Assembly: GCA_030704615.1 (NCBI GenBank)
Contig: CM060733.1
Coordinates: 930,001-994,000 of the forward strand
Length of the DNA stretch: 64,000 nt
DNA from: Takakia lepidozioides
Lineage: Eukaryota > Plantae > Bryophyta
Direction of reading: 5' to 3'
Under the pieces are notes generated by a model. That model saw only the letters and a program-made list of their open reading frames with translations. It ran no database searches and was not told the DNA's origin. Shown here piece by piece: positions 17,194 through 64,000 of this stretch. How positions within the stretch are numbered: the first letter of the stretch is position 1; the number at the start of each line of letters is the position of its first letter. A program made the translations under genes and the position numbers.

Positions 17194-17225
<32 letters not shown>

Positions 17226-19450: not shown

Positions 19451-19600
19451 GGCGGCAAGGTATTGGGTCCAATTCTTGATGGGTAGCTAGTGTAACCTTG
19501 GGCTTGTATCTACAGGTACTGTCACTGGTGTCTTGTGTAACTCCCTTTTTTTCTTTTCTTTTTTAGGGGAAGTAGCCCTCAGTAAAACTCCTCTTAAGTA

Positions 19601-25299: not shown

Positions 25300-25321
25300 C
25301 ACTACAGGAAAAGGGGGGGGG

Positions 25322-32375: not shown

Positions 32376-32715
32376 GCGTGACATGTAACTATTTCACGAC
32401 AAGCAGTCACGTGGAGAAAGAGGCCATTGGCTGGGGGGGATTTTTTTGCCGCAATTTCCGTGAAGTCGTTGCAGAATGCTCCTATAGCCCCTCCTCTGGC
32501 TTCTAGGAACATTTCATTCTATAAAATTAGCTTTTAATAACTATTATGACACTTATTTAGACTCGTTTCGTGTTAAGGGTTTAGAGTCAATTGTAATTTT
32601 TCGATCGAGATCGCAGTTCCTTAATTCTTAGCCATTTCCACGTTTGCTTCAGTAGTGTTTAACTTTCCGTTACTTATTAGTAAACGTCGTTTAGGGTTGC
32701 TCTGATTGTTACAAA

Positions 32716-33595: not shown

Positions 33596-34149
33596 TGGTC
33601 GGAATTGATCACATGTCATTGGGCCCCTCATTGACCACATGTCATTGGGCCCCTCATTGACCACGAGATCACGGTCCCAGGCTCTCCGTATTGGCAATGC
33701 AAATCATAGCACAACAGCACATCTCTTGTCCCTAGACAGTGACGACGAGGATTCGAATGAGTAGCAACGTAGTACATAGACAATGTGGATTTTTGTTGTA
33801 CCTTGAATTTTTGGAACACACTGATAGCACTCCGCAAATTTTGTATATACACCAATTTTGTTAATACACATGTGCGGTACCTACAAATTTCAATTGCATG
33901 AACAACGTAACGGGTTTTATTCCGGTTTTGCACTCATGTGATGTGGAAGAAGTGGTTCACCCTCAAATTTACAATGGTGTAATATTTGGTCATGACGTGT
34001 ATGTGGATATCTGCAATGAACTCCTTAAGATGGGCAACAAGAAAAATGGATGTTAACCAATAAGAACACTCGTCGTCCTGACAAATTTTGCCTAGTCTCC
34101 TATTTCAAAATCATGTCGAATATTCGATCTACATATGAAGAACATACCC

Positions 34150-37100
34150 ACAAAGTTAACGAAGCACAATATAATTTTGATTGATCTCATATTACTCTGG
34201 GACCTGTCAGATGGTACATTGGACATACTGACCAAGTCTCGAAGCGAACGAAATCATTTGGATAGGCAACCATCCGTTGGCCCATTGGACGAATTTCGTT
34301 TCATCTCACATTACTCTAGGACCTCTTAGATGGTACATTGAGCACACTGGCAAATCTGAAAACTAACCAAAATCGTTCGGATGGGCAACCATCCATTCAG
34401 CCATCGAATGAATTTTGGATTGATCTCATATTAGTCCAGGACCTGTGAGAAGGTGTACCAAACATACTGGCAAAGTTTAAAAATAAACAAAAATGATTTG
34501 GATGGGCAACCATCCGTTCAACCGTTGGATGAATTCCGTTTGATGTGCTATTACTCTTAGACCTGTTGGACGACGTTTCGGGTGCACATGATTTTTTTTT
34601 CATTCCATTTTTTAGTCATATGTCTAATGACGGCATATGCAACGTGCGTGCAAATTTTTATAGCGAACAAAAGTCATTATGATCCAAAATCATAGTTTCT
34701 TCCCTAATTTGCACTCCGAACTTGATTTCTCTTCTACTTCATACACTCTTCATAGAGAGTTCTGCAACAGTGAGCAAAGTGAACACTTAAAAAAAAAAAT
34801 CATTTTTGTTTGATCCAAAATTTTATAGGGATGTAGCGATGGGAAGGTAGAAGCCAGAAAACAAGATTGAGCAAAAAATAAAATCGTTACGTAACAGAAA
34901 ACCCCAATCAAAGACAATGTAAACCTATTTATTTGCTTGAAATTCATTTAAACTCAATTTAATTGAAGATTGGTGGAAGAGCGAGGGCGCGGTTGGGGAG
35001 GCAAATGTTTGTTTCTTCTATTGGTTCTCCGCATATGCGTTACACACATATTCAAGCACATGCGGGCAAAAGATATACCTCAACATTGTCCGTTCAATGG
35101 GTGCATTGGTCTTTCACCCATGACATGATTTTTTTTTCGCAATGAACAAAATTGAATGACACATGAATGCCTCATTGGCCTATTGAATGAATTTTGATTG
35201 ATTTCATATTACTCTGGGACCTGTCAGATGGTACATTGGACAAACTGGCCAAGTCTCGAAGCAAACGAAAATCATTTGGATGTGCAACAATCTGTTGGCC
35301 CATTTGACGAATTTCATTTCATCTCATATTACTCTTGGACCTTTTACATGGTACATTGAGTACACTGGCAAAGTCTGAAAACGAACCAAAATTGTTCGGA
35401 TGGGCAACCATCCGTTCAGCCATCGAATGAATTTTGATTGATCTCATATTAGTGAGAGGGTGTACCGATCGTCTGACAAAGTTTGAAAGCAAACAAAAAT
35501 AATTTGGATGGGCAACCATCCGTTCAACTGTTGGATGAATTCCGTTTGATGTGCTATTACTTTGAGACCTGTTGGACGGCGTTTCGGGTGCACATGATTT
35601 TTTTTTTCATTCCGTTTTTTTAATCATGTGTCTAATGACGGCATATGCAACGTGCGTGCCAAATTTCATAGCGAACAAAAGTCATTAGGACCCAAAACCA
35701 CAGTTTCTTCCCTAATTTGCACTCCAAACTTGATTTTTCTTCTACTTCATACACTTTTCATAGAGAGTTCTGCAATAGCGAGCGAAGTGAACACTTTTAA
35801 AATTTTTCATTTTTGTTTGGTCCAAATTTTTGTAGGGATGTAGCGGTGGTAGGGTTGAAGCCGGAGAACAACATTGAGCAAAAAATAAAACCGTTACGTA
35901 GCAGAAAACCCCAATCAAAGACAATGTAAACCTATTTATTTGTTTGAAATTCATTTAAACATAATTTAATTAAAAATTGGTGGAAGGACGAAGGCGTGGT
36001 TGGGGAGACAAATGTTTGTTGTTTCTCTTGTTTCTCCGCACATATGTTGCATACATATTCAAGCATATGCGGGCAAAAGATGGGCATCAACCTCATCCGT
36101 TCAATGGGTGTGTTGGTCGTTCAACCATGACAGGAATTTTTTTTCGCAAGGAATAAAATTGGATAACATGTGAACGCCTCATTGGTCTGTTGAACAAATT
36201 TAGATTGATTTCATATTACTCTGGGACCTGTTAGATGGTACATTGAACATACTAGCCAAGTCTTGAAGCGAACAAAAATCATCTGGATATGCAACCATCC
36301 GTTGGTCCATTGGACGAATTTCGTTTCATCTTATATTACTCTGGGACCTCTTAGATAGTACATTGAGCACATTGGCAAAGTCTGAAAGCGAACCAAAATC
36401 GTTCGGATGGACAATCATCCGTTCAGCCATTGAATGAATTTTGATTGATCTCATATTTGTGAGGTGTACCGAACATATTGACAAAATTTGAAAGCAAACA
36501 AAATTGATTTGGATGGGCAACCATCCGTTCAACCGTTGGATGAATTTCGTTTGATGTGCTATTACTCTTAGACCTGTTGGACGGCGTTTTGGGTGCACAT
36601 GATTTTTTTTTTCATTCCATTTTTTAGCCATATGTCTAATGACGGCATATGCAACGTGCATGCAAATTTTCATAGTGAACAAAAGTCATTATGACCCAAA
36701 ATCACAGTTTCTTCCCTAATTTGCACTCCGAACTTGATTTCTCTTCTATTTCATACACTCTTCATAGAGAGTTCTGCAATAGTGAGCGAAGTGAACATCT
36801 TTTTTTTTTAAATCATTTTTGTTTGGTCCAAAATTTTGTAGGGATGTAGCGGTGGGAAGGTAGAAGCCATAGAACAAGATTGAGCAAAAAACAAAATCGT
36901 TACGTAGCAGAAACCCCCAATCAAAGACAATGTAAACCTTTTTATTTGCTTGAAATTCATTTAAACTCATTGCAAATTGGTGGAAGGGCGAGAGCGTGGT
37001 TGGGGAGACAAATGTTTGTTGCTTCTCTTGTTTCTCCGCACATGTGTTGCACACATATTCAAGCATATGCGGGCAAAAGATGGGCTTCAACCTCATCCGT

Positions 37101-39005
37101 TCAATGGGTGCATTACTCGTTCACCCACAACATGATTTCTTTATCGCAATGAACAAAATTGAATGACACGTGAATGCCTCATTGGCCCATTGAACGAATT
37201 TCGATTGATCTCGTATTACTCTGGGACCTGTCAGATGGTACATTGGACATACTGACCAAGTCTCGAAGCGAACGAAATCATTTGGATAGGCAACCATCCG
37301 TTGGCCCATTGGACGAATTTCGTTTCATCTCACATTACTTTGGGATCTCTTAGATGGTACATTGAGCACACTGGCAAATCTGAAAACTAACCAAAATTGT
37401 TCGGATGGGCACCCATCCATTCAGCCATCGAATGAATTTTGGATTGATCTCATATTAGTCCAGGACCTGTGAGAAGGTGTACCAAACGTACTGGCAAAGT
37501 TTGAAAGCAAACAAAAATGATTTGGATTGACAACCATCCATTCAACCGTTGGATGAATTTCGTTTGATGTGCTATTACTCTTAGACCTGTTGGACGGCGT
37601 TTTGGTGCACATGATTTTTTTTTCATTCCGTTTTTTTAGCCATATGCCTAATGACGGCATATGCAACGTGCGTGCCAAATTTCATAGCGAACAAAAGTCA
37701 TTAGGACCCAAAACCACATATTTGCACTCCAAACTTGATTTGATTCCTACTTTATGCACTCTTCATAGAGAATTCAGCAATAGAGAGCGAAGAGGACACT
37801 TTTAGAAATTTTCATTTTTGTTTGGTCCAAAGTTTTGCAGGGATGTAGCGGTTGGAGGATTGAGACCAGAGAACAAGATTGAGCCAAAAATAAAACGTTA
37901 CGTAGCAGGAAACCCAATCAAAGACAGTGTAAACCTATTTATTTGCTTGAAATTCATTTAACTCAATTTAATTGCAAATTGGTGGAAGGGCGAGGGCGTG
38001 GTTGGGGAGACAAATGTTTGTTGCTTCTCTTGTTTCTCCGCACATGTGTTACACACATATTCAAGCATATGCGAGCAAAAGATGGGCCTCAACCTCATCC
38101 GTCCAATGGGTGCATTACCCATTCACCCACGACATGATTTCTTTATCGCAATGAACCAAATTGAATGACACGTGAACGCCTCATTGGCCCATTGAACAAA
38201 TTTCGATTGATCTCATATTACTTTGGGACCTGTCAGATGGTACATTGGATATACTGGCCAAGTTTCGAAACGAACGAAAATCATTTGGGTGGGCAACCCT
38301 CCGTTGGCCCATTGGATGAATTTTGTTTCATCTCATATTACTCTAGGACCTCTTAGATGGTACATTGAATACACTTGCAAAGTCTGAAAAGCGAACCAAA
38401 ATCATTTGGATAGGCAACCATCTGTTCAGCCATCGAATGAATTTCGTTCCATCTCATATTAATCCGGGACCTGATACATGGTATGTTGAACACAGTAACA
38501 AAGTTTGAAAACAAACAAAAATGATTTGGATGGTCAACCATTTGACCGCTATTCTTTTTCGCAATGAGCAAAACTTTTATGATAGGTGAACGCGCCGTTG
38601 GCCCATTGAACGAATTTCGTTTCATCTTATATTACTCAGGGACCTATGAGACGGTATACTGAAGACGTTGTGGAAGTTTCGAAGCGAACAAAAATCATTT
38701 GGATGGGCATCCATCCGTTGGCCCATCAAACAAATTTCGTTTCATCTCATATTACACTAGGACCCGTCTTATGGTATGTTGAACATACTGACAAAGTTTG
38801 AAAGCAAACCAAACTCATCTGGATGGGCAACCGTCTGTTGGGCCATTGAACGAATTTCGATTGATGTCATACTCCTACGGAACATGTGAGACGGCGTACC
38901 GAACATACCGGCAAAGTTTGAAAGGAAACAAATATCATTCAGATGGTCAACCATCCGTTGTCCAATCGAATGAATTTCGTTTCATCTCGTATGACTCCTG
39001 GACCT
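34150..39005. repeat. ~1.0-kb tandem repeat (~5 units) built on ~120-bp subrepeats
   Basis: ATTACTCTGGGACCTGTCAGATGGTACATTG-like anchor at ~34190, 35208, 36215, 37215, 38217; recurring GGATGGGCAACCATCCG palindrome. Confidence 0.93.
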
Positions 39006-39010
39006 ATTAG

Positions 39011-39310
39011 GATAAGCCACACGGTGGCAATGGCAATTGGAGATCGAAGGGAGGGCCTTCGCACGCCAGGGCGACACCCCGTGCTACGAAAGGAGAAATA
39101 GGTGCAACAGCACACGGCTGGCAGAAGGCGACCTTTGATGGGGTGTACTTTAATTGCGGGGAGACTAGGCACATGGCCAAAAAGTGCCCGAAACCCCGAC
39201 AGTTGAACATGACAACGGCGACCACGGAGCTTTCCGAAGACTCCATCAACCGCTTGGTGGAGGCAGTGGTCGCCAAGACTTTGCAAGGTAGACGACTACA
39301 CGTGTGAGCT
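39011..39310 (+). pseudogene. Isolated retrotransposon gag fragment with zinc knuckle
   Basis: DKPHGGNGNWRSKGG...FDGVYFNCGETRHMAKKCPKPRQ is a degenerate CCHC knuckle. Confidence 0.6.
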
Positions 39311-39397
39311 GTTCCAGGAGGCAAGAGCATCACGTAGCGGAAGCCGCTTCATGTTCATAAGTAGCAAAATTTTCAGAACTATCGTGTCGTTGTCGTA

Positions 39398-40620
39398 TAG
39401 GCGGTCGATTCATTTTAAAAAACAACAAAAAAGAACGGTCGCTATTGGGCAGTCGCATCATCTTTATAAATACCAAAAAGAGCGACCACCATATGGTGGT
39501 CGTTTCATTTAAAACAAATACCTAAAAGAGCGACCATCGCATTGGCGGTCGCTTCATTTTTAAAAAACAAAAAAGAACGATCGCCATAGGATGGTCGCTT
39601 CACTGTTTAGAAAAAATTAACAGAGCGACCGCCGTAGTGGCAGTCGCTTCATTTTGTAAAAAAATGAAAAAGAGAGAAAAAAAAATTAAAAAAATTAAAA
39701 CTTTAGGAGCGACCGCCGTATTGGCGGTCGGTTCAGGTTTTTTAAAAGCGAAAAAGAACGACCGCCATGGGGCGGTCGCGTCATTTTTTTAAGAAATAAA
39801 AAACTTTAAAAAAAAATTAGTAACAAATTTAAGGAGCGACCGCTGTATTGGCGGTCGCTTCACTTTCTTAAAAAGCGAAGAAGAGCGACAACAGTATGGC
39901 GGTCGCTTCATTTTATTATTTTAAAAAACTTATTTTAATAATTTAATAATTAATTATTGTTTTTAAAAAAACCTTAAAGAAGTGACCGTTGTACTAGCAG
40001 TCGCTTCAGTTTTTAAAAAAGCGAAATAGAGCGACCCCCATATGGCGGTCGCTTCATTTTTAAAATAAATATACGAAAATGAGCGACCACCGTAGTGGCA
40101 AAAAAAAAACGACCACCGTATTGGCGGTTGCTTCATATATATATTCTTAAAAAGAGCGACTGCCGTAATTGCAGTCGCTTCATTTAAATTTCTTAAAAAA
40201 AAGAGCCACTGCTGCTAAATTTAAAAAACCAAAACGAGCGACCGCCATTTGGTGGTCGCTGCATTTAAAAAAAAAAATTAAAGAATCGACGGTTTGGTGG
40301 TCGCTTCATTTTAGTTTCAAAATAAAAATATGCGACAGCCGGCGAATGGCGGTCGTTGCATTTCTTAAATTTTTTTTTAAAATTGCGAGCGACTGCCAAT
40401 CTGGGCGGTCGCTTAATTTTTAAAACTAATAGTTTTCAAGCGACCGCCAATATGGGCGGTCGCTCCATTTAAAACTTCATAAATTACCGGCAACCGCCAA
40501 TATAGGCCGTCGCATAATTTAATAAAATATTAAATTACAAGCAACTGCCAATATGGGTGGTCGCTTGATTTAAAAACTAATAACTTTTAAGCGTCCGTAT
40601 TTTTGGGCGGACGTATGTTT
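39398..40620. repeat. Hairpin minisatellite array 2 (GAGCGACCGCCGTATTGGCGGTCGCTTC variant)
   Basis: Same GCGACCGCC/GGCGGTCGC stems with A-rich spacers. Confidence 0.9.
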
Positions 40621-40759: not shown

Positions 40760-43318
40760 CAGGAATGATAACTAGGAGTGAAGCATACAAGCATCCTTGC
40801 TAAGTTTAAGAAGGGAGAGAGATACTTCCCAACGCAAGCGCCGCTGCGAAACATAAAAGCCAAAGGAAGGAAAGAGACAATGCATTCACAGCATTGTCTC
40901 CCGCCTGTGAGAAGAGACAAAACACCGCCATTGCGCATCCCCAGAAGCTCGTCCAACATGGGTACGAAGCAGTAGACAGGGTAGCAGCAAAACGCAGACG
41001 CCATAACTCTCATCCCGCGAGCTCAGAAGCACGAGGAGTGTTGCTGACGGCAGGAGAGATACCCTAGGGCCATGCCCAATTTTTCATCCGTGCAGGATAA
41101 GTAATCAACACTACTTTTTTCAAAACCCGACGGATGTCATCCGTTAGCTAGGTTTAAACAATAGGTTATAGGGTAGGGGTTAGGGTTTCACTCCTTATTT
41201 AGCCATAATTAAGGGTAATTAAACAACAGTCCAGGGCCATCATAGGTTGCATATTTTATCCGGTTCAGATGAAAAAATTAATAAGTTCATCCATTTGGAG
41301 AAGGTTCATCAGTAGGATGGAAAAACAATACATAATATCCAAGGCAACGGTTTCACATCCTAACAGGTAATTCAACATCCCCCAAAAAAAATGCATCATC
41401 CGGTACGGAAAAAAACCATAAAAGAGGAATAAACGAATTAATATCCTGGTATTTTTCATCCGGTATGGATGGAAAAATTTATACATAGGATGCCAGTGTC
41501 AACCCCTACAGAGATAATTCCTCATTCTCTGGTGACTCATCTGGTATGGATGAAAGTCAAATAAAAGAGGAATGAAAAAATCATAGACCCAATTTAGAGG
41601 TAATTTAGTGTCCACCTAGGTAATTCATCCGGTATGGATAAAAATCGTTATAGGGCGGGTGAAAACACTGTTTAGAGTCCATCCGGTATAGATGGAAAAA
41701 CAGGAAGAAAACACTGATAAAACCGGCAGGCGGGGTTTGTTCTTGTGTGGGACAAGATAAGATATTGCCACCTATATGTAGGCTGCAAGGCATCTTGGTT
41801 CAACCTGCTCACATACCTTATCACCAGGTTATGTATTGAAGGAGCACAAAGTGCTGAGGTCATGCAAAGGGCAAGGTACCATGGTCCAGCCTGCCCTATT
41901 ACCTTTTCAAGACACGTTTTCAAACATACATCTTGGGCATGACCCACAGGTTGCAGCATCTTACCTTATCAGCCATTATTTACGGCAGGTCATGCATCAG
42001 CCAAGGCATAAGGACCAACCTGCAATTTGTCAGAATCAAAATATGCCTCCAAGCAATCCTACTTGGGCATGATGAAATAGATTCCATACCATTTGTATTC
42101 ACCCCGAGACATGTGATCATACAAGGTGTCAAGGGACTGTGAATTCAGCCTGTCAAATTGCAAATTCAAGACTTGTATACACAAACAACTTGAACAACCG
42201 AGATCCAGCCTCTTTTGCACATAAAAAAACCAGATTGCAGATCATAGGCCTGATGTCATGACAAAGCCAAAACTAGAAGTAGGATCCCATTACAGTTTAC
42301 CATCCTCATCCTTCAAGAGGTCCATGCTAAAGCTTGCAATGAACACCTCACTATGATCCATTACACACCAGAAACAGGCCCGAAAAGGAGCAGGTCGGTG
42401 CCTTATCAGGCTACCACCATAACATTCAAGGCCACCATGTCCATAGAGACCCAAACCCGCCGAAGCAGCCCTCATAAAACCAGATCCTCTATGGCCCAAA
42501 GAACTTACAACCTAGCTCAGTAATCCACAGGCCCTGCTGTCAAAGATCAAAATATAGGGTATGCATGGTTTGTATGCAGGCCTCAGGAGACAGGCCAGAT
42601 AGGTCGAGCTGCCCCATCGACGGCAGAACAACAAAAGCCAAAACATAGGTTGTAGCAAGCCAAACCACGAGCAGTCGGGTTGAATTCGGGGCTGCAGGCA
42701 GCAACCACTTCAAGGCGCGATAACTTACAGGTCTCCTCAGCCCATATCCCAACTGCATGATCAAGAAACTTCAAAGTAGGTGATGATCCTCACCTGGTCC
42801 CATCACAAACCCCCACAAAATCAACGGATTAGTGAGGATTGTGGAACCCCAGGTGAATCACAGACCCTCACACTTGTCATCGATGTCAACTAAGAATCTC
42901 AAAAGCAAGAGAAGAAGATAAGAACACAAGGATCCCTAAACTCCAAAGGCACCTTAAGCGATTGGGGAAGAGGGTTATGCGCCATCACCACCCACAGCAA
43001 GCCGCATCCACAAAGCACATGAGCAATGAAGCAAAGCAGGCAAACTCGCAAGGCTATTAGAAGGGAGGGAGAGAGACTTCCCAGCACAAATGCAATTGCT
43101 AAAATTAAAAGCCAGAGGAGGGAAAATGCTACTGCATTCACAGCGATGTTTCCCGCTGCAAGAGAGACAAGGCGTCGCCTTCGCGCCTCCCCAGGCACTC
43201 GTCCAGCACGGGTACGACACCACAAACGGGGCAGCCACCAAAGCACGGCCGCCATAACACTCTCCCCACGAGCTCAGAAGCACATCGCGTGCTTCTGACA
43301 GCGGGAGAGACAACATAG

Positions 43319-43350
<32 letters not shown>

Positions 43351-45855
43351 CTTCCGATTTTTCATCCGTGGATGAAAAATAGTAGTACACATCCTTCTAC
43401 CCTGACGGATTTCATCCGTAGCAGAGTTAAAAATAGGTTTTAGGGTAGGGGTTAGGGTTTCACCCCGTAATTAATCATAATTAGGGGTAGTTAAGACCAA
43501 TTCCAGGTCATAATCATCTGTACTCGTCATCCATAAACAGATCACTTTGTCAAGATAAAAAAAAGTAGGGAATATCATCCGTGGCAGCAGTTTACCTCCA
43601 CCTAGGTAATTCATCATTCCTCACCAGACCACCTTGTATGGATAAAAGAGAGTCAATGAAAGAGGAATGAAGAATCATTATCCTGGAAGTTTTTCAACCG
43701 GTATAGATGAAAAACATGATGGTGTTGGCGACCCTCATAGAGGTAATTTTTCATTCCTTGGTGACTAATCCGGTATGGATGAGAGTCAATAAAAGAGGAA
43801 TGAAAAAACCAAAAAACCATCGTAAAGGTAATTCAGTGTCCATCTTGGTGGCTCATCCGGTATGGATGAAAAACCGATAGAGGATGGATGAGCCTCTGTC
43901 AAAACTTCATCCAGTATGGGTGAAAAAACATGAAATCAACACTGAGAACAACCTGCTGGTTCCCAGTAGAGAGGGAAGATATTCATGTCATGTCAAGACA
44001 TGGACAAGACCCACTAGGGTCATTGTCAATTAAAGACATAAACAACCCAAAACAGGGCACCATCTAACATTTCCATTCTTGTCATAGCTTCCCATGAATT
44101 GACATCACCCAATTAGTCATGATAAAACAAGGTGGGAGGGCGGGGTTTGTTCATGTAGGGGATGCAAACATCTTGAACACCCGAGATCCGGCCATCTTGG
44201 CCAATGAATCATTTGTTTATGTGTGGGACAAGATAAGATATTGATGTCCCTGTGCAAGGCCTCTTGGTTCAGCCTGTACACATACTAGCAGCCTACCATT
44301 TCAGCCATTAATTATGGCAGGTCATGCATCAGCCAAGGCATAAGGACCAGCCTGCAGTTTGTCAGAATCTCAGTATGCCACCAAGCAGTCCAACTTGAGC
44401 AAGATGAAATAGATTCCATATCATTTGTATTCACCCCGAGACATGTGATCATACAAGGTATCAAGGGAATGTGAATGCAGCCTGTCAAATTGCAGGTTCA
44501 AGACTTGTACCAACAAGCAGCATGAAGAGCCGAGATCCAGCCTCTTTTGTATATAAAAAACCAGATTGCAGGTCATAGGCCTGATGTCATGACAGATCCA
44601 AAACTATAGGTAGGATCCCATTGCAGCTTACCATCCTCATCCTTCAAGAGTTCCATGCTAAGACATGCAAAGAACACCTTACTACGATCCAGTACACATC
44701 AGAAGTAGGCCTGAAAAGGAGCAGGGCAGTACCCTACCAGGTTGCCGCCTTAAACTTCAAGGCCACCAGGTCCATAGATACCCAAAACCGCCAAAAACAT
44801 ACCACCAAAACCAGATCCTCTTTGGCCAAAAGAACTTACAACCTACCTTAATAATCCACAGGCTTTGTTGTCAAAGATCAAAAGGTAGGGTATGGTTTGT
44901 ATGCAAGCCTCAGGAAACAGGCCAGTCAGGCCGAGCTGCGCATCGGCGGCAAAACGACAAAGGCCAGAACGTAGGCTGTAGCATGTCAAGCCAGGGGCAG
45001 TCGGGTTGAAATCGGGGCTGCAGGCAGCAGCCACCTCACAGCGCACAAGCCCATAGGTCTCCTCAGCCCATATCCCAATCTGCATGCTCAAGAAACTTCA
45101 AAGTAGGTGAGGATCCTCACCTGGTCCCATCACAAGCCCCCACAAAAACCAACAGGTTAGTGAGGATTGTGGAACCCCAGGTTAATCACAGACCCTCACA
45201 CTTATCACAAATGTCAACTAAGAAACTCAAAAGCAAGAGAAAGAGATAAGAACATGAGAATCCCTAAACTCCAAAGGCACCTTAAGCAATTGGGGAAGAG
45301 GGTTATGCGCCATCACCACCCGCAGCAAGCCGCCTCCACAAAGCACATAAGCAAAGCAGGCACAATCGCAAGGCACTAGAAAGGAGGGAGAGAACTTCCC
45401 ATCATAAGCATCCTTGCTAAGCGCAGAAAAGCCAGAGGAGGGAAGATGTCACTGCATTCATAGCGGTGTTTCCCGCTGCAAGAGAGACAAGGAGCCGCCT
45501 TCACGCCCCCCAGGCGCTCGTTCAGCATGGGTACGACACCACAAACGGGGCAGCCACCGAAGCACGTCCGCCATAACACTCTCCTCGCGAGCTGAGAAGC
45601 ACATCGCATGCTTCTGATAGCGGGAGATACGACATAGGGTTGTCCCTCGATTATTCATCCGTGGATGAAAAACAGTAGGACGCATCCGTATACCCTGACG
45701 GATTTCATCCGCAGCAAGGTTAAAAATAGGTTTTGGGGTAGGGGTTAGGGTTTCCACCGTAATTAATCATAATTAGGGATAGAAAAGATCAATTCCAGGC
45801 CATAATCACATCATCCATAGACAGATCACTTGTGTCAGGATGAAAAAGTAGGGAA
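40760..45855. repeat. ~2.3-kb tandem duplication (two full units plus a partial one)
   Basis: AATAGGTT...GGGTAGGGGTTAGGGTTTC anchor at ~41160, ~43432, ~45726; 41.97-43.5 kb aligns by eye with 44.3-45.85 kb. Confidence 0.9.
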
Positions 45856-50754: not shown

Positions 50755-52065
50755 ATACCGCTGCTGTTTCCAGTTGACCATCCACCCACATTGTCCCACC
50801 ATTGACTGGGGTCAGAAAAGTGTCTCATTCCAAAGCTTCTCTTCATCTCTGTTATCTGTTTTTGTGTACTTTCCTGCTGCCACCTCGGCAGTAACTTGCA
50901 AAGTCACTCCAAACCACCACAGATCATCCCAACGAGCTAATGAGTCTGATGAAAGGGCAAAACAGGCTGAAATAGGTTGAAGAAGAAGGTGCCCTCACCA
51001 CAAATGTGTTGAAGAAGGTACCTTCATCAGTAGTGCCTTGCTCTTTCAATTGCGCTACTGCCGCTGCTGTTTCCAGTTGACCATCCACCCACATTGTCCC
51101 ACCATTGACTGGGGTCAGAAAAGTGTCTCATTCCAAAACTTCTCTTCATCTCTGTTATCTGTTTTTGTGTACTTTCCTGCTGCCACCTCGGCAGTAACTT
51201 GCAAAGTCACTCCAAACCACCACAGATCATCCCAACGAGCTAACTTACAGAATTCAATATACAAATTCAGGGCTGAGCCCGATGAGAGGGCAAAAGAGGC
51301 TGAAACAGGTCAAAGAAGAAGGCTGAAATGTGTTGAAGAAGGTACCTTCATTAGCAGTGCCTTGTTCAAATTGCGCTGCTACCGCTGCTGTTCTAGTTGA
51401 CCATCTACCCACATTGTCCCACCATTGACAAGGGTCAGAAAAGTGTTCATTCCAAAGCTTCTCTTTTATCTCTGTTATCAGTTTTTGGGTACTTTCTGGC
51501 TGCACATTGGCAGTAACTTGCAAAGTCACTCCAAACCACCACATATCCACCCAACGAGCCAACTTACAGAATTCGATATGCAAATTCATGGCTGAGCTTG
51601 ATGAGAGGGCAAAACACACTGAAACAGGTCAAAGAAAATGGTACCATCAGGCTGAAATGTGTTGAAGAAGGTACCTTCATTAGCCGTGCCTTGTGGTGTC
51701 AATTGCGCTGCTACCGTTGCTGTTCCAGTTGACCATCTACCCACATTGTCCCACCATTGACAAGGGTCAGAAAAGTGTTCATTCCAAAGCTTCTCTTTAT
51801 CTCTGTTATCAGTTTTTGGGTACTTTCCGGCTGCCACATTGGCAGTAACTTGCAAAGTCACTCCAAACCACCACATATCCACCCAACGAGCCAACTTACA
51901 GAATTCGATATGCAAATTCATGGCTGAGCCTTATGAGAGGGCAAAACACACTGAAATAGGTCAAAGAAATGGTACCATCAGGCTGAAATGTGTTGAAGAA
52001 AGTACCTTCATTAGCCGTGCCTTGTGGTGTCAATTGCGCTGCTGCCGCTGCTGTTTCCAGTTGAG
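50755..52065. repeat. ~300-330 bp tandem repeat (4+ copies) upstream of the hAT transposase
   Basis: AGTTGACCATC(C/T)ACCCACATTGTCCCACCATTGAC at ~50772, 51075, 51395, 51727; partial at 52039. Confidence 0.92.
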
Positions 52066-52979: not shown

Positions 52980-55679
52980 CTAGTGCGGGAACCGGAACCG
53001 CCACTCACCCCCCGGTTCCAGTTACAAGCCAGTTCCTGGAAAAACCCGAACCTGCCGGTTCCGGTTCTGGAACCGGCTCGTCCCTGCTCCCCCGGTTCCG
53101 GTTCCAGTATCGGTTCCCAGGCACCGGAACCAGAACCGCCGGTTCCAACCCGCCTAAGCGGGTACCCGCACAACACTGGTACATATAGGCCCCACCAACA
53201 TTCTGTCCAAAGGATTACCTGCAGGCTGGTCTCCCCCATAGTTAAGAACTGGGCTGAAAACCAGAAAAGATTACCTGTAGGGGAATAATCCCCTTTGTTA
53301 AAACGCAACAGGGAGGCAATTCCGACTTTTCTGCCGGATCAGCTAGCTCAAAACCGTTGTTCTTCAGAGCCCAGCCTCCCCATCAAGGTCTACGAAACGA
53401 GTGAAAAAAGTTTTTTTTTTTTTTTTTTTTTTTTTTCCACTCTGCCTGTTCGCGGCCTTCCGTGGCTCCAACCGCCACTACTCCTCACGGCCCGCCCTAG
53501 GCACTCATTGGCCACGGGTTGCCCAGTGATACCCCATGGCACCACTCCCACGAGCCTTCACGGCCCGCCATCCCCACGATCTGGTCACCGTGCCCACCCG
53601 TTGTGTCCGCACCACGACTTCCAATGGTCACGGTCAACGGTCACGGTCAACCATCACAACCTGGGCTCGTGGTATCTCGTGATACCGCCCCAACGGCCCA
53701 TCACGGTCACTATTCCCTGCGTTCCCTTGAACTCCCAACAAGTCCCCATGCGTTCTCGAGGCGTTCCCGGCGTTCCCACGCGTTCCCGAGCTCTCCCATA
53801 GCTGGGGTTTGCTCCTGCACCTGCTGCCACCGAGCTATGGCTTCTGCGGAGCCATCAACCCCGTCGCCCTACACTCCTGAGCTCTCACAGCCCACTAGAA
53901 GTGCCTCCAACTCAACAAGCAAGCTATATGCTGCCCAACAAGCTCCCTTTTCTTCATGAAGCTCACAAAAACAAATCTGAAAATACACACTTTTACAAAC
54001 TTGGTGCACTTGCACTTCTCATGCATCTCCCTTGGCTCTAGGGCGCCTCGTTGCTGCCCTTCCAGCCCCGCTCTTGCCACTCCAAGAGCCCTTACACTGC
54101 TGAGTTTCAAATTGAAACTCCAATCAGCACATGCTTCACAAGTGCACTGATTTGCACACAAGAGGGACCAGCCCCATCTCTTCACTCATACTTCTTCATG
54201 AGCTTGGAGCTGAAGCTCCCAACGAGCTGCGATGCATCCCCTCGCAGCTCCACCATTCGGCTGCTCCTCATCTACCCGCAACAACTAGTTTCGAGCAGAA
54301 ATACCTGGAGCTGATCATATCATCTCCAACCTGCACCATGCTAGCTTCCCATGCGCAGCCTACATTCCTGCAGCTCCTTAACTTGGTCTGCAACTGAAGA
54401 AGACGACCACCAGTTCGTCCACTCGTGGCCAACATCTCCTCTGCTTCATACTAGAGGCCCAAACTTGGTTGTCATAGCGTTGAGCTATGCAACGCCGCTC
54501 TTCAACATAGGCTACCCGCTTCTCTATCCATTGCAAACCTGCAACGTGTTCGCCTTTGCACTCTATCCACTTTGGATAGGCTCATGCACGGATCCCTGCA
54601 CTCTAGGCTGAACCGCTTCTCATGAAAACACAAGTGCTACAAAACAACTCGAACCTCGCACTCACAGACTCGAGCTGATCTTTTTCAAGTGATAAAGAAA
54701 TGAATGATATAAGCACACAAGCTCTCTCAAACTCACATACCTGCACATGAAAACATCACTCATATATTAAGTCGAGCCAAGTGCATCCCACGCCATGGGG
54801 AACCCACACTACGGCGCCATAGCTAGACGCGATGAGGCTCAACTCGAGAAAGATGAGCCCACCGCGATCTGCCGTGAAGATAACAACGCCAGGTGCCCAA
54901 ACATGTATTGGCCCCTGGATTGACACTTGGGTCAAAACCAAATGCCAATATATAAAAGCTAGCTATTTCCTAGCTAACTTCACACTAGTGGTAAAATAAC
55001 TTGACAGAGTGACTCAGCAGCAGCAGCTGCTCAGTCACTCTCCCCCCCACCTTTTTTTTTGTTTTTTTTTCCTTGCCTCTCCCTCTCTTTCTCCTCTTTC
55101 CCTCTCTCTCCTTTTTTTTTTCACTCACCACAATAAAGAACTAACTAGGGAGGGAGAGGGAGAAAGAAAACCTACCTCTGCTGCTTCGGCGCCATGGCTG
55201 CTGCAAACGGCACGTCTCCTCGAACCTATGTTTGTTTCAATGTACGGGTGGTAGTCTAAGGTGCAATGTAAACGTGACTCTTCTGACGTTAATCCCTAAT
55301 CTGGACCATATTTGCAGCGGAAATCTACTGACACTGAACGCAACGCTCTCTCCCCCGCTCCCCCATGCCCCTCTCTCTCCTTCCACTTCCTTTGCGGACG
55401 CCTCTCCACGACGTTTCTGCCACACAGGAGAGAGAGAAGTTAGCAAGAGAGAAAGAGAGGAAGAGAGGAAAGAGACAAAACATACCTACGCAGCACGGCG
55501 TTCGAGCGGCAACAGCAGCTTGGGGCGAGTTCGTCTCCGCGTTGCGACCAACCGGGGCTACCTCTGCAGGTAAGCTTCCTCCACCCCAAGCCCCACAGTC
55601 CCACCTCTCTCTCTCCCAAAGAGCAAACAAAAATTGGGGGGGGGGAGAGCAGGTGCTTCAAGCACTTAGGAAAAACAAA

Positions 55680-55870
55680 ATGGCGCGGTGCCGACATGCC
55701 ACGCCCGGCCGTGGCACGCTGGCGCCGCGCCTTATTTTTGAATTTGAAAATGGGGGTTGCCACGGCCGGTCGTCGCAGCTTGACCCCCCTGTGTGGCAAC
55801 AACAAAAAAACGTGTCGCAAGATGCGACGCCGCGGCGTGGCAATGAGCAACGGCAGGGGGTGGCAACCCC
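55680..55870. repeat. Internal cluster of CACTA subterminal-type motifs
   Basis: TGCCACGCCCGGCCGTGGCA (~55697), GCCACGGCCGGTCGTCGC, GCGACGCCGCGGCGTGGC, as at 25.3-26.0 kb and 63.7-64.0 kb. Confidence 0.75.
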
Positions 55871-57621
55871 AACCTCCCCCTTGTTAGCTGGGCAACAGGG
55901 GGTTACTTTGTAGGTTTAGGGTTTAGGGCCTTTTGGGGTTTTCAGGGTTTTTAGGGATTTTTTTTTTGTTTGTTTGGTTCCCTTATGGTTATGGGCTAGG
56001 GTGTTTGTTTTTCTTTATGGTGCTAGGTTTTGGTTGTGGGTGTTGGGGTTCAAAGGATAAACGGTGTAATTATGATTCACACATCCAAAAAGTGGTTCAA
56101 TCTGATAAGCGCAAAGCGCTGGGTCTCAGTAAATTTTTCCATGATGTGGGCAACCCGAAGACAGAACGTGAGGAAGGATTTATTGTCTTGGGTTCTCTCA
56201 CCAGAGGGATGCTCCACCTTTGTTTATCAATTTTGAAATTCCTGAGGCTGAGGCAAAGGCTCAAGCCCTTGGGCAATGTGGGACTGGTCTTTTTGGGATT
56301 TTTTTCTTTTTTCTTTCCAATATTTTTTTGATATTGGGTTTTGGAGTTTGAATTTGTGAGGGTCGCTACGGCCTCCCAGCGATGGGGCGTAGTGACCCCT
56401 TGCTGTCGTAGGGTGGAAAAGGGACATAGGGTTTTTTCTTTTTCTGCCAACGGGTTTTGAGAAATGAAAGTGGGGGTGGTGTGTGTTAATTAGGATGCGA
56501 TGGTGAGGAAACATCGACCCGTCTCCCTCGAGGATGGGCAGGCGGTGCCACAAATTGAAACCATAACGCCTACGATACCTACGATACCCCTCGACCCTAC
56601 ACATCTCATCTACGTGGTGCTGGGTGAACCAACTGGTCACATGGGGCACAGGCTCTGGCACGAATTCTGCAAGCAGACTGGCGCGAAATGCCTCCCGTGC
56701 AATGTGATTGCGAGCTTGGGCATCAAGTCGTGGCTGCAATATGCGTAGTATACGACGCATCAATACTTATATCGTAATTTGGTTTCATGTATGCTTATCA
56801 ATCATACTATATTATTAGATATACCAAATGTAATATGAATGAGGGTTAATGAGAGGGGGTGGAAAAAGACTCACCTTTGCCGCATCGGCAATCAAGTTCA
56901 TCGCGTAATATTTTTCGACAATATGCGGTCGACGCCTCGGTGGTCTGGTGCCGCCCGGCGGTATCCGTGCCCAACACTTAGTGCACCAACACTCAATCCT
57001 GTCGGGAGGGGGGTCAAAGGTGGACGTGCGTGGGCGTTGTGTCTCTAGACTAGCAAGGCTCTCACCACTGGGTGGTCCGCGAGGGGGCAACCCGCGGCGC
57101 GCCCGACTCGATCCCGGAGTGTCAACACCTCCGCATCACCTAAAATTTGATCCCGGTCCCTTCTACGATTGTGTCCGCCAGCCTGTATTGGATCAGGTGC
57201 AACGGATCGCTCCTGACCAGGAAACACGGTTGGAATTGGGCGGCGAGCAGGCCTACCCCCCCCTCCGCTTTCCTCAGGCGGTCCCCCTGATCCAGAGTCC
57301 TCATCTGATGATTCTCCCCGCCGTATATGTTGTAGCAGCTTGTAGGCCGATTGTGCCCCCCCCTCCCCCCCCTCCGTTTGTTTCTTTGCCTGATCCACGT
57401 CCGGTAATACCTGATCCGGACGTTGTACCCCCGGCTGTGCCTCCGGCATCACATCCTCAACCACCTCCAAAGTTGCTGGAACATACATTTGGTGGCAGAC
57501 TCTTTTTCTCCCTCTCCCTGGCCCCCTTGAAGACTAGAAATACTAAGGCTGCCTACCTAGGTTTCCTCCCCTTCGGCTTGGGCAGCCTGAGCCGGATCCT
57601 CGCCCTCGATGGGAAGCGCAT

Positions 57622-58287
57622 ATGACTATGTTACTGAGGACCGTCCAACCTCGTTGCTGGGGGAATCATCTCGACCCTCCTACCCCCATCCGAGAGAATG
57701 TGGAGTTCGAGTATTGGGGTAGACGATATGTTGTGAGAGCCACTACTGACCCTGCTATGGGTCGGGGTTTATTCACGGTCAATGATATTGTGGTTCCTCC
57801 TCGGAGAAACAACATGGTGGACTTGTTTCCCTACTACGGTCCATACTACACCTCCGCGGAGTTCCGTACATTACGCCTCGAAGCCCCATACATCCTACCC
57901 TACATTTTGTGTGTCAACGGACAAGATGTACGTAGACGGGGGTTGTCTCCCATTGAGATCAGATTTTGTGATGGTGACCCCGATATCTTTGGCAATGTTG
58001 TTGGGCTCATCAACAGTTCTTTTGGTCATCCTAGGAGAACCAATGTAGTAAGGGACGAGCGAAGCGATGGGCATGAGAGCTTTTGTGGTCATATGTCGGT
58101 ATATTGTGAGGGGATGCACATGTTTGTCATGACATGTGCTAGTAGGACTATTACGCCTGGCAGCGAGCTATTTGCCTCATACGAGTTCTCCCGAGATGAT
58201 TGGGACCTCCAGTTACAGCATGAATGGGATGTATATGGTAGAAATAGGGTTCATTTGAGACAGGGATCGCGTAGAGGGACATTGTAG
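57622..58287 (+). CDS. SET-domain protein (putative lysine methyltransferase-like), intronless, inside the CACTA element
   Basis: SET motifs in canonical order: MGRGLFTVNDI, LFPYYG, YIL, DGD...GNVVGLINSS....N (NHS-like), CASRTITPGSELFASY; no post-SET cysteines. Confidence 0.8.
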   Translation: MTMLLRTVQPRCWGNHLDPPTPIRENVEFEYWGRRYVVRATTDPAMGRGLFTVNDIVVPPRRNNMVDLFPYYGPYYTSAEFRTLRLEAPYILPYILCVNGQDVRRRGLSPIEIRFCDGDPDIFGNVVGLINSSFGHPRRTNVVRDERSDGHESFCGHMSVYCEGMHMFVMTCASRTITPGSELFASYEFSRDDWDLQLQHEWDVYGRNRVHLRQGSRRGTL

Positions 58288-58489: not shown

Positions 58490-59030
58490 GCCTGCACATG
58501 ATTTTTTTTTTATTCCATTTTCCAAGCCATATGCTTAATGATAGCATATGCAATGTGTGTGCAAAATTTGGGAGTAAACAAAAGTCATTTGGACCCAAAA
58601 CCATATTTTGTTCTCTCATTTGTATTCCAAAGTTGAGTTATCTTCAACTTCATGCATTCTTCATAGAGAATTCTGCAAAAGTGACCCTAGAAACACACTT
58701 ATTTTTTTTCCATTTTTTTTTTGTCCAATTGTTTGCATGGACGTAGTGGTGCAAACCCCGATGTCACAGAACAAAATAAAGCCAAAAATAAAATCATTAC
58801 CCACCTCAAAACTGCAATCATATATTTTTCTAAATGTAAATATTCATTTTAAATTCTTTTAAATTCTTTTAAATTCGATTTAATTCAAAATTGGTTCAAG
58901 GGTGAGTGCGTCGTTGGGGAGGCGAATGTTTTTTTTTTTTTTTTTGCTGGATCTTTGCACGTGTGTTGCACACATATTTAAGCACATGTGGGAAAAATTG
59001 AAGCTTGAGCCACATCCGTTTGATGGGTGC
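58490..59030. repeat. Diverged single copy of part of the 1-kb repeat unit
   Basis: TGCACATGATTTTTTTT...GCATATGCAA...AAAAGTCATT..GACCCAAAACC...TTCATAGAGAATTCTGCAA matches 34583-34770 and its sister units. Confidence 0.8.
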
Positions 59031-59282
59031 AATGGCATGAAAGGATTTTCTTTCACATTAAAAACTGGTTGATATGGTGAACGCGTCCTTGGGGGGGCAA
59101 ATGATCTTGTTTGGGTTTGAAACTTTGCATGCGTGACGTTGTGCAAATACATGTAATTATTGAATGACATATTTGGTGCATGCACACATTGAAGGTTGTT
59201 GTTTGCATTTCGCTTATAATAAGTTGTATGGTTGCAATGACACATTATAATATATGCCCGTATGTTCATTTGTTCGTATCAG

Positions 59283-62200
59283 GACTTTGTCCATCCCTTC
59301 CCGATGCTTTCTTGGGGGACCCCATCCAAAAACAACCCAAGTACATTAGGTGGGAGTTGTGGGCGAGACGCTGCCCCGACCGACGATCAAGTACCGAAGG
59401 ATGATGACGATGACAGTGACATTGATAGCAACAGTGATGATGGAATTAGCCAGGAGGATGTGCAAGCTATGAAGGATCTCTTAATGCATCATATAGGCGC
59501 TGATGCAACCCATGGAGAAGAAACCAGGCCAATCGCTGATCCTGAAATGGGCCCCTCAAATGACATGGAGAGGAAGGCGAGAACTCCCTTGTACAAAGAG
59601 GCGAAAGTGAGTCGATTTTCAACAATCTTATTATTGCTCAATCTTCAAGTTCGATTTGGCATAAGTAATGTTGGGATGTCTGCCATAATGCGAACTATTG
59701 CGAACTATATCCTTGCTCCACACGGTCGCGGAAAGAGGTGCGCGAAGTGTTGGACTCCGTGGGGATGGGCTATAAGATTTTTCATGCATGTCCATGTGAT
59801 AAAACCTTATACTACGGAGAGGATTCGCATCTCACCAAGTGCCCAAAGTGCAAGGAAGACTGATATCGAGATGATGTCCAAGGGAAAAAAGTACCACGCA
59901 AGGTATAAGCGTCATTCCCCCTCGCATGAAAATTTTCTTCTTTAATCTTGTCAATGCATGTCAAGTATATTCCACAAAGTTTGGGGTTTAGAGAGTAGTA
60001 CTCATGTAAGATCTGATTGTGGCTTTGGAAGGAGTGAGTAATACTAGCAACGTTCGGTTTTGACCATTCACGCCCAAATGAGAGAGAGGCTGTATAAAAG
60101 GAAAGACATAAGGGTGTTGTATTATGTGTCATAATGGGATGATTATATGTGGGGGACGTGGGGTATTTCATCTTAGAAAATGCATTACTTTCCGTTCCTC
60201 ACGCGATTGAAGGCACACCACTAAAGCCCGGAGTTGGCAACACTGATGAGATGACACGCCTCGCATCGGAGCCCCCCGGGAAAGGTGTGCAGGCCACAAG
60301 ATTCACAAGCATGGAGGCATACTGAAGAGATGTGGCCTTTTCTCTTGGAGGACCCACCATATGTCCGTCTCGGCTTCTCCACAACACCCCTCCGTATCTT
60401 TCAATAAAAAAAGACTATATCATGTTGGCTGCCATTGTACCAGGTGAGTGTTCCCATTTCATGCTTATTATTCCCTTGGACTTTACATTAATCTTATGAT
60501 CTCTAGCGCAATTCGGATGCAAGATTGATGAGTGACATAATCATGGAGTAAGACGTGTAATTCATTATGTAGTATAATTTGTACATTGGTGGAGCATTGA
60601 AACAATGATGTGAATGTCTCATAGGGAAAAAACAAGTGGCAAACATGGACACGTACTTGCGACCTCTAGTTGATGAACTTAAGGAGCTATGGAGGGGGGT
60701 CCCAGCATTGGATGCTTCACTTGACCCTATGGCCGGACAATCTTTTCAAATGAGAGACATATTGCTTTGGACAATGCATGATTATCCAGGTAAATTATGT
60801 TCCCCATGAAGAACCCGCATACATTTACTTGTTAAGGCCAAATAGTCTTGTCAAGGTGACAGTCTTGTGCACCGTAGTGGGGTAGATGGCACTATGGGCC
60901 ATGCACATGAAAACTTCTTGTCTTGGCTAATGTGGCGGGATGTGTACAGGACTAACTGTTTGCTCCGGGCTAAGCACCTACCATGTGTACTTACATTGTG
61001 GCGATGATCTTGATGCACATAGCTCCCGCCATCTTCGCAAGATGGTGTATCCCAACTACCGTAAGTTTCTTCCTATGAGCCATTGATGGAGAAGAAGAGA
61101 TAAACACTTGTTTGATGGAAAAGAGGAGGTATGTCCCCCCCCTGTGACACCATCCGGGCAGTTTTGGGAAGACCGATGGAAGGAGGCCCATACGGGCATG
61201 GTCGGTGAAGTGGACGTGCCCGACATGAAGCGACTTTCAATCTTCTACGAGTTGACATATTGGGCGGTACGTATTCCACAAAAACACCGTCAATATCCCT
61301 ATGCATGCATGTGATATTGCACATTTGGTATGCGTTGCATTGTCACTTTCACGTCAAAAAATTTGTGTAAGTATTTGTGGGTGGGGATATATATTGGACC
61401 TGAAGATTTGCCATCTTCTAGATCCTATGCATATTGAGAAGAATGTCTGCTCGTCTTTTTTTCAGGTTCTTCATGGCACGCCGGCAAAGAAGGGAGTGGC
61501 TGCAAAATGAGATTCTCTCGGTGTTAGAAAGGAGCTTGAGGAGCAGGGTCGCATGCGCCATGTAGGGGCCGAGCAAAATGGTGTGGAACCAAAGGGTGTT
61601 GTACGGTGGAAGTATAGGCGCGTACCTTGACAATGGACAAAGAAGGAATACAAGAATATGATAGCCACCATAGGTGCTGTCCGAACACCAACTGGTTATG
61701 GGTCATCCCTCCGTATGAAGTTCAACGAAGACGGGGTCCATGGTTTGAAGTCTCATGACTACCACAATATTTTGCAAGACATCTTGCCCATTGTAGTACG
61801 TGGGACATTGACGCCCGAGGTCCGCGAGACAATCTACAGATTGGGAGGCTTGTTCCGGTGGATTTGCTCCAAAGAGTTGGATGAAGCGGATTTTCCACGC
61901 ATGAAGAAGGAGATGGCGGAGATAATGTGTATGTTGGAGATGAACCTTCCTCCTTCCTTCTTTGATATCCAAGTGCACTTGGTAGTGCACTTAGTGGAAG
62001 AGGCTTCGATTGCCAGCTCCTTTCCTTGGGCGTTACATGAAGATTTTGAAAGCATTTGTAAGACAAATGGCGCACCCGGAGGGTAGCATGGCGGAGGGGT
62101 ATACATTGCAAGAAGCTATGTTCTATTGCATGGAGTATATGGCAAGGGTGGATGAGGAAGCCCCTCGGATGTTGAAGGAAGAGGAGGATGCACGAACCAA

Positions 62201-63365
62201 TGACATCGTTTTGCCCAAAAAATCGAAGAGGGTAAAATTGCCGACTTAATTATTGAGCGAGCGCATGACTTCATATTAAAGAACACCCCATCCATACATG
62301 AGTGGGAGGCAAGATACAATAACCTTGTTCAACAACGAGAGGAGGAGACGCTTGCATGGAGGCGGAACGATCCAAGGCCGGTTACTAGACGCCGTCGACG
62401 AGGAGCGGGCCGCCGGAATGTTCCTTCATAAGATTTGCTAGTGGAATTGCAGCTTCTAAGTTCATTCCAACAGTGGCTCAAGATTTCAGTTTATGACGCC
62501 GTTTCTCAAGGTGAGGTGGTTTCAGATATGGTGCAAGACCTTGCAAGGAGCCCATCTCAATTCGCGACCTCATACACGGCGGTTTGGGATCACGGTCGTC
62601 ATTTCCGCATTCGTGCTCTTGACATGAAGCGCAAAACAACGTTTGATTCTGGCTTGTGTGCCATATATTGGCAAGACTTCGTGTGGGGTAAGGGAGATAC
62701 ACGACCTGCTATGAGCAAACTTGAGTACATTGGAGAGCTTGAGAGTATACTCCAACTTCAGTATACAAGGTACCGGCCTCTTCTCTTCAAGGGAAGGTGG
62801 TTCTAGCCACATCTTGTGGGGCCCTCCGCAACACTAATGCGAGATGATTGTGGTTTCATGTGCGTCAATGCAGATAGGCTCAACCCTACTCATTGTCCCT
62901 CCAATGAGCCTTTTGCATTTCCTTCAGACATGGAGCAAGTTTTCTTTTCCGGTGACAAAACAAGAGGGGGAAATTGGAAGGTGGTTGTGCATGCTCAGCC
63001 AAGAGGAAGACGTTTCTATCATGGTCTCCGGATCTCCACGGGGTGAGGCAATTACGGTGGAGGGACGGACTGGTCATAATGATGCTGATGATGGAGGCTG
63101 GGTAGAGGGGGTAGAAGAGGATGATGACGCCCCGGAGAATGCATCCCGGACCCTATATGATGAAGCTTCAGAAGATACGGATGTTGGACAAGGAGATGAA
63201 GACACGACAATTGACAACGAGGTGGAGGATGATTCAGAGGTGTCTTTTGAGGGCCGGGCCATTATGACGATGACTCCGATGACCACTTGTAGCTTGATGA
63301 GGATGAAGAAGCTTCGGATGATGATGATGTTCAAGTTGATTAGACACATAATCAAAGCTATATAA
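59283..63365 (+). pseudogene. CACTA/EnSpm TnpD-type transposase (Transposase_21, DUF4218, DUF4216 regions), multi-exon, disrupted
   Basis: TPLYK, HACPCD..LY...CPKC, DTYLRPLVDELKELW, LLWTMHDYPG, LDPMHIEKNV, GLKSHDYH, LPPSFFDIQVHLVVHL, HPEGSMAEGY, LFKGRWF, EPFAFPSDMEQVFF. GT-AG introns (e.g. donors ~59903, 60444, 60790); stops (e.g. 59861, 62804) and frameshifts. Confidence 0.93.
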
Positions 63366-63459
63366 TAATTCTCGCACCGAACTGTACCCATCCCTTCGAT
63401 TGATTGTACATGTACATGCATATTGTAGCTTATTTCTATGATTCATCAATGGTCTTGCA

Positions 63460-63463
<4 letters not shown>

Positions 63464-63511
<48 letters not shown>
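63464..63511. repeat. (CT)n microsatellite
   Basis: Direct reading. Confidence 0.9.
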
Positions 63512-63514
<3 letters not shown>

Positions 63515-63674
63515 AAACAAATCTATTAACAACCAAGAGAGAGAGGGAGAGAGGGAAAGGGGAGAGAGAGGGGGGGCAAAGAAAGAAAAACAGAGAGGTG
63601 CCCCCCCCCCCCCAGAGTCCCTTCCCCCGTCCCCACCCCATCTCCTTGCCCCTTAACTCAAAGAAAAAGACCGC

Positions 63675-64000
63675 CCCCCTTGCCACCCCCCGCCGTGGCA
63701 AGCCTAAAAAACCCGTTACAATACCCCCTTGCCACGCCCGGCCGTCGCAGAGGCCTTTTCCCCCTTCAAGCCACCTTGCCATGCCCGAGCGTGGCAAGTG
63801 GGGCCACCCCCCTTTGCGACGGCTAGGTGTGGCAAGAAAGGGCTACCTCTTGCCCTTGAGGCCACCTTGCCACGTCCCGGCGTCGCAGGATGATCCCGGC
63901 GCTGGGGGGCGACACCTGGGCGCTGGGTTGCCACGCGACGGCGTCACAAGCAGCGCCGGCGTCGCACGCTCAGCGCCGCGCGGGGCGGATGCCGTCACTA
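63675..64000. repeat. Right subterminal repeat region of the CACTA element
   Basis: TTGCCACGCCCGGCCGTCGC and related motifs; CGTGGCAAGCCTAAAAAA is shared with ~25910. Confidence 0.8.

Follow-up and report, generated by a model that had tools for sequence, protein, structure and literature searches.

To our knowledge, few transposons carry chromatin enzymes of their own. Among plants a single case has been worked out, that of VANC of the VANDAL elements, an anti-silencing factor that is encoded by the transposon and acts on its own chromatin. En/Spm, an element of the CACTA type, produces TnpA and TnpD from one transcription unit by means of alternative splicing. Cargo genes with a SET domain have been published for Helitrons. 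HarbingerS DNA transposons (Kojima & Jurka 2014, Repbase Reports, as cited in PMC12730594 and in bioRxiv 10.1101/2025.02.11.637652) have a SET lysine-methyltransferase accessory gene. One more SET-containing accessory gene, PAG2, is described in Plavaka, giant elements of the EnSpm superfamily from the red alga Bostrychia moritziana, where it codes for a fusion of an N6-adenine DNA methylase (PF01555) with SET, belongs to a three-gene cassette in elements of 17–19 kb, has been conserved over long times and is proposed to be a chromatin modifier (bioRxiv 10.1101/2025.02.11.637652).

Here we describe an open reading frame (ORF) with SET motifs, which is located upstream of a degenerate CACTA transposase in 64,000 nucleotides of Takakia lepidozioides DNA (assembly GCA_030704615.1, contig CM060733.1, positions 930,001–994,000 of the forward strand), hereafter called the window. 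Its family resembles HarbingerS as a cut-and-paste DNA transposon lineage with a SET gene as a regular accessory, but HarbingerS falls into the Harbinger/PIF superfamily, whereas the elements considered here are CACTA with Transposase_21, DUF4218 and DUF4216, the two being compared by description only. With Plavaka PAG2 it shares the same broad transposon superfamily and the presence of a SET accessory gene, and differs from it in having SET without PF01555, a zinc finger in front of it and a canonical land-plant transposase of the TnpD type directly downstream. No sequence relation of the SET family to TnpA or VANC was found, and while these two act by DNA binding or hypomethylation, the activity proposed for the SET family is protein-lysine methylation. 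The initial sequence-only reading of this DNA knew of no described plant CACTA family with SET cargo. This stands for land plants in so far as the literature search found no report of a TnpD-type CACTA with a SET gene there, but not for SET cargo in general, given the published HarbingerS, Helitrons and red-algal Plavaka. The overall best explanation of the data, which we consider highly likely, is that the ORF represents the SET exon of an accessory gene of a CACTA lineage and that the copy present in the window is a dead remnant. Coordinates of all features are collected in Table 1.

Table 1. Features of the SET-bearing element in the window (position 1 is the first letter of the window; a dot means that no strand is assigned)
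Feature	Position	Strand	Remark
5' subterminal cluster, palindromic TTGCCACG...CGTGGCAA motifs	55640..55900	.	no CACTA terminus adjoining
Inversion of ~0.7 kb relative to paralogs, approximate extent	56455..57243	.	joint positions in paralog contigs
Exon 2 of the inverted 5' part	56561..56733	-	in paralogs the frame runs on into the linker (57244/57245)
Putative intron of 141 nt, GTGAGT...TTGCAG ends	56734..56874	-	missing from paralog contig X1
Zinc-finger exon (CWCTKC...H)	56875..57090	-	strand opposite to SET in the window copy
Proline-rich linker ORF	57244..57625	+	frame differs from that of SET; stop overlaps SET ATG
SET-domain ORF, 221 codons	57622..58287	+	conserved domain ~57664-58194
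C-terminal tail of the SET ORF	58195-58287	+	without conservation
Spacer between SET and transposase	58503..59031	.	71-75% similar to ~1-kb tandem array units at 34.2-39.0 kb
TnpD-type CACTA transposase pseudogene	59442..63010	+	Transposase_21 motif region, DUF4218, DUF4216
3' subterminal motif cluster	63680..64000	.	extends past the window end

The ORF was found exactly where the sequence-only reading had placed it, and so were its motifs: GRGLF at 57760, GNVVGLINSS at 57991–58020 and ELFASY at 58165–58182. It is translated into 221 residues without stops, and the same frame extends only some 25 codons upstream of its ATG before it is closed. Given the local base composition, the probability of an open frame of 221 codons is ~1.7e-5; chance origin of the ORF is ruled out by this value together with homology. 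Only one SET region and one transposase region of the SET-CACTA family are present within the 64 kb. Taken alone, the ORF matches PF00856 with an E-value of 0.1 (13.5 bits, which is under the Pfam cut-off of 22.4 bits); a word-indexed search for protein homologs with the ORF as a single query gave no matches, and phmmer against PDB sequences gave none either for the ORF or for the domain of P0001. Exhaustive HMMER search registered at least 61 relatives with 30–44% identity, 27 of them below 1e-10, and their alignment revealed the conserved blocks WGRRWIV, GLGLFA, LFPYxGPxY, IDGDPxRxGNIAGYINSS, NxEW and AGDELFxxY. In the profile check suggested earlier, PF00856 was matched by 26 of the 29 aligned members individually (E up to 0.01, the best being 6.5e-9). 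No domains other than PF00856 and no fusion with PF01555 were found in these 29 proteins. In a language-model neighbour search, SET accounted for 23 of the 30 nearest clusters.

When the family profile was compared with solved structures, the best match, over the full length of the domain (E 7.5e-5), was the SET domain of the LegAS4/RomA type from Legionella (PDB 5czy, 8swi), followed by EZH2, MLL, SETD8 and ATXR5. LegAS4 has the same blocks GxG, GN...YIN-x-S, N-x-E-F/W and L-x-x-Y and, like the family, contains neither the histidine of the NHS motif nor a cysteine-rich post-SET. It differs in being a secreted bacterial effector with other domains, and identity is only ~19–22%, so that the match is a resemblance and no evidence for common origin or a common target. 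The AF2 model of the ORF built from the single sequence was poor (pLDDT 38), and the one based on the alignment reached a pLDDT of 79.9 with block means of at least 86 over residues 21–150 and 171–190. With this model the best 50 Foldseek matches were all SET lysine methyltransferases, and VIA-align superimposed 120–139 residues (Z 11–12.4, rmsd 2.1–3.4) on Set1/COMPASS, SETD8, EZH2, ASH1L, LegAS4 and SET7/9. Structure prediction, which had also been proposed as a check, thus recovered the SET fold, and the ORF holds a domain of the SET type with the fold of lysine methyltransferases. Residues ascribed to catalysis and cofactor binding (G47-x-G49, N125, N131, N141, E182 and Y187 of ELFASY) are conserved in the family, and every invariant or nearly invariant family residue is retained in the window copy. 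The replacement of NHS by NSS noticed in the ORF is genuine; it is common to the whole family and therefore does not reflect damage. In some members N of this motif is also replaced by Q (IQSS).

The ORF lies on the strand of the transposase and upstream of it, as was supposed from the beginning, with a gap of ~1.2 kb, and between clusters of subterminal motifs at 55.64–55.90 kb and 63.68–64.0 kb. Linkage to CACTA transposases was followed in the loci that were informative in this respect (L001–L004, L007–L011 and L015–L017), leaving out of the count L005, L006 and L012–L014, which were too short or, like L006 and L012, had downstream ORFs that could not be assigned. In every homologous locus with enough flanking sequence, SET is closely followed on its own strand by a CACTA transposase of the TnpD type. 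Translated comparison showed the window to be collinear with L001–L003 of the liverwort Riccia sorocarpa, the SET exon and then the transposase blocks being on one strand, and the same order and strand were observed in L015 and L016 of this species, in L011 and in L007–L010, which are one element found in four runs. The JGI metagenome contig L004 contains an intact SET ORF of 324 aa, followed after 292 nt by ORFs with Transposase_21, DUF4218 and DUF4216, and in the fern Ceratopteris richardii (L017) unannotated transposase coding begins on the same strand ~200 nt past SET. In the relatives the distance between SET and transposase is 0.2–1.3 kb.

Since SET domains of linked elements are only 30–40% identical to each other, their association with CACTA appears to be old and maintained, which supports the view of SET as an ancient dedicated cargo rather than a chance capture. 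The same order of SET and transposase in liverwort, fern and environmental contigs bears out the original suggestion of dedicated cargo. That the family combines the SET fold with the status of dedicated CACTA cargo can be held with great confidence. Two observations on Riccia sorocarpa may be added. In L002 (10001–11795) the gene model P0002 exits SET before its final tyrosine motif and enters an acidic segment, similar to the acidic N-terminal part of the window transposase ORF (59262–59500); it is either a splice form combining SET with transposase or an annotation artefact. In L001 a gene for Peptidase_C48, a ULP-like protease, is located at 16473–19574 on the opposite strand ~5 kb downstream of SET, outside the SET-transposase unit, and may be another transposon cargo.

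Many of the relatives are proteins of 260–500 aa with SET as the C-terminal part, and several database members are short (159–234 aa) and consist of the domain alone. Upstream of the SET domain, at a distance of 400–700 nt and on the same strand, the motif C-x-C-x2-C-(K/R)-G...H...GRH was found in 8 of the 9 other loci scanned and also, on the SET strand, in the fern locus L017; in none of these loci does it occupy the opposite strand. A single ORF of 423 aa encodes the zinc finger, the linker and SET in L006. Peptides with the zinc finger from five of these eight loci match positions ~28–63 of PF13963 with E-values from 1.1e-4 to 0.14, all below the cut-off of 27.7 bits; the zinc-finger peptide of the window gave no match to this profile, and for transposase ORFs of the same loci no PF13963 is on record. 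By its sequence the first exon looks like the transposase-associated domain, the N-terminal module of canonical CACTA transposases. The family protein, as deduced from the aligned loci, is composed of a zinc finger, a linker and a SET domain of ~175 residues. The assumption that the ORF is an intact stand-alone gene without introns has consequently to be abandoned, because in the family gene SET is preceded by a zinc-finger exon, an intron and a linker. Searches for the upstream part gave nothing meaningful, both when N-terminal regions of the homologs were compared with the window by tblastn (noise only) and when ORFs from both strands upstream of SET, as well as N-terminal parts of the homologs, were scanned with Pfam.

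How the upstream part is organized in the window became clear from two paralog contigs (X1 and X2), assembled from two public runs whose RNA status is a guess; they are 90–99% identical to the window and do not represent the same locus. Both runs join position 56561 to 57244 on opposite strands, and X2 also contains the joint 57187|56455. Removal of 56734–56874 joins the two flanking minus-strand ORFs in frame, as frame arithmetic shows, though what is taken for an intron may be an insertion or deletion that distinguishes the copies. The plus-strand proline-rich ORF, of which the linker is a part, spans 56948–57625 in full, and X1 has 87 nt in place of the 86 nt found in the window at 57470–57555, which would restore a common frame for linker and SET. 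Together with the orientation of the motif in other species, the joints and frames of the paralogs indicate that the ancestral gene was continuous, occupied one strand and has been broken twice in the window. Reading across the joints is a matter of frame arithmetic, the gene pieces having been examined separately, and the ~0.7 kb inversion could be an assembly error. The ORF may therefore be called uninterrupted, as it was in the sequence-only reading, for the SET exon, but not for the rest of the ancestral gene, which is rearranged.

The transposase downstream is collinear in its coding with intact transposases of L002–L004 and matches DUF4218 (E 9e-12 and 6e-9) and DUF4216 (E 6e-4). Its conserved blocks are interrupted by no fewer than 7 in-frame stops. 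The frame shifts at two places or more, namely 59720/59726 and, inside DUF4218, 62038/62037, with no space for an intron at either, and 182 extra nt at 60442–60623 have no counterpart in the paralogs or in Riccia. On the 3' side the window, when reverse-complemented, opens with the TAGTGACG portion of the family terminus, which puts the expected 3' terminal repeat ~22 nt past the window. A 5' terminal repeat was sought near 55.0–55.6 kb and none was found there. The sole canonical family terminus of the window (CACTACAGGAAAAGG, with a perfect CACTACAGGAAAAGGGGGGGGGTAGTGACG) is situated at 25300, and the sequence after it showed neither SET nor transposase coding of the family. The segment 25300–26060 comprises the CACTACAGGAAAAGGGGGGGGGTAGTGACG terminus and a subterminal region of ~680 nt with the same motif family as in the SET-bearing element. 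Either it is a truncated copy in its own right, or it is the real 5' end, moved ~30 kb away by nested insertions. Long GA/CT-rich stretches of low complexity occupy 55000–55640 and 63440–63680, with a (CT)n run at 63460–63510, and their location on non-equivalent flanks hints at additional rearrangement, or else at a piece of some other copy on the 5' side.

With the zinc finger inverted, the linker out of frame, the transposase broken and no 5' terminal repeat found, the ORF is to be regarded as the C-terminal end, open to this day, of what was once a longer protein in an element now dead, and the window copy is probably non-functional. One can imagine instead that the 221-aa product starting from the ATG at 57622 works as a stand-alone SET protein, maintained by the host or, in trans, by the element family. 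The ORF is open throughout and has all family-invariant residues, its exon contains no lesions, as against at least 9 in 2165 aligned nt of the transposase, and several database members are no longer than 159–234 aa. Yet the probability that SET escaped lesions by chance is 0.06–0.11, which is mildly low but not significant, its integrity indicates nothing beyond chance or youth, and the short entries in the database may be fragments produced by gene callers. What the ORF lacks, the zinc finger and the linker, is exactly what is conserved upstream in 8 of the 9 scanned loci, and the segment preceding its conserved core deviates from the family block IPSRxG...LxGxAA. Besides, the stretch was sought among runs on record as RNA and was absent from all of them. 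A working stand-alone protein is on these grounds quite improbable. Selection was also assessed from divergence between copies, as had been advised. The paralog X1 is 93% identical to the SET ORF; of the 23 listed differences, which cover 57622–58031 irrespective of codon phase, 14 fall on third codon positions (p = 0.006), and 14 synonymous versus 7 non-synonymous codons among them correspond to pN/pS of ~0.13. Three young Riccia paralogs, one of them with a stop, are 2–3% divergent, the same as their flanks, and give dN/dS of 0.3–1.0 on only 14–17 changes, a pattern of neutral decay after insertion which is uninformative on the active lineage.

Plant DNA transposons frequently capture fragments of host genes, and in principle a host SET fragment could have been picked up by one CACTA element through transduplication, as in Pack-CACTA, to play no role in its life. 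Apart from this general knowledge, such an origin is favoured by the lack of pre-SET and post-SET domains. It is hardly compatible with the same arrangement in elements of liverwort, fern and environmental samples, whose SET domains are so divergent and still keep their motifs, nor with the low pN/pS between copies, and no close homolog of host type came out of any search; capture is thus highly improbable. For the dedicated cargo of the remaining reading there is a further choice, since the family SET might be catalytically dead and serve for binding or as a scaffold, in the way of a histone-tail reader or a partner of the transposase. The histidine of NHS is gone family-wide, some members have IQSS, and inactive PR/SET-like domains of PRDM3 and PRDM5 also appear among the structural neighbours. 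On the other side, the GxG glycines, the asparagines and the ELxxxY tyrosine show little or no variation, and LegAS4, which is an active enzyme, also lacks the histidine, having NFS at this position of the profile alignment. A dead SET therefore looks unlikely, and judging by the conserved residues we lean towards a catalytically active family protein. That its methylation target would be a histone has slightly less than an even chance.

The SET exon belongs, as we believe, to an accessory gene of a CACTA lineage. In intact relatives this gene consists of an exon with the C-x-C-x2-C...H zinc finger, a short intron, the proline-rich linker and SET of ~175 residues, and the transposase exons come after it on the same strand at a distance of 0.2–1.3 kb. 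Its product in active elements would be a SAM-dependent lysine methyltransferase, perhaps made by alternative splicing of a transcript common with the transposase, similarly to TnpA and TnpD of En/Spm. The N-terminal zinc-finger module would tether it to the element or to the transposition complex, and its substrate there, be it chromatin or a transposition protein, would be modified for the benefit of the element. Most plausible among these roles is anti-silencing through a histone target, a non-histone target being the alternative. In its complete form, with a CACTA lineage older than the divergence of liverworts and ferns that possesses its own zinc-finger-SET writer, co-spliced with the transposase and directed to the element's own ends or complex against silencing or to license transposition, the scheme is tentative and rather doubtful. 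If true, it would mean a transposon-encoded system of histone or protein methylation in land plants. The presence of SET beside CACTA transposases in liverworts, ferns and Takakia suggests that protein-lysine methylation takes part in the life cycle of these elements and makes the gene an assayable candidate for a DNA transposon that writes or counters histone marks. For annotation it means that the ORF 57622–58287 is a transposon relic and not a host chromatin gene.

Other repeats were observed elsewhere in the window. A second, different CACTA-like non-autonomous element occupies 29900–40400. It has dense palindromic subterminal repeats of ~50 nt (CGACCGCCATTACTGGCGGTCGC type) at 29.9–32.4 and 39.4–40.4 kb, and its interior is formed by a ~1-kb tandem repeat of 4–5 units at 34.2–39.0 kb. 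An array of direct repeats with a period of ~320 nt is located at 50758–51969 and comprises four units, two of which are 99% identical. Finally, two direct repeats of 274 nt with 88% identity were registered 2.3 kb apart, at 41955–42228 and 44287–44560, and are possibly the ends of a small insertion of the LTR or other type.
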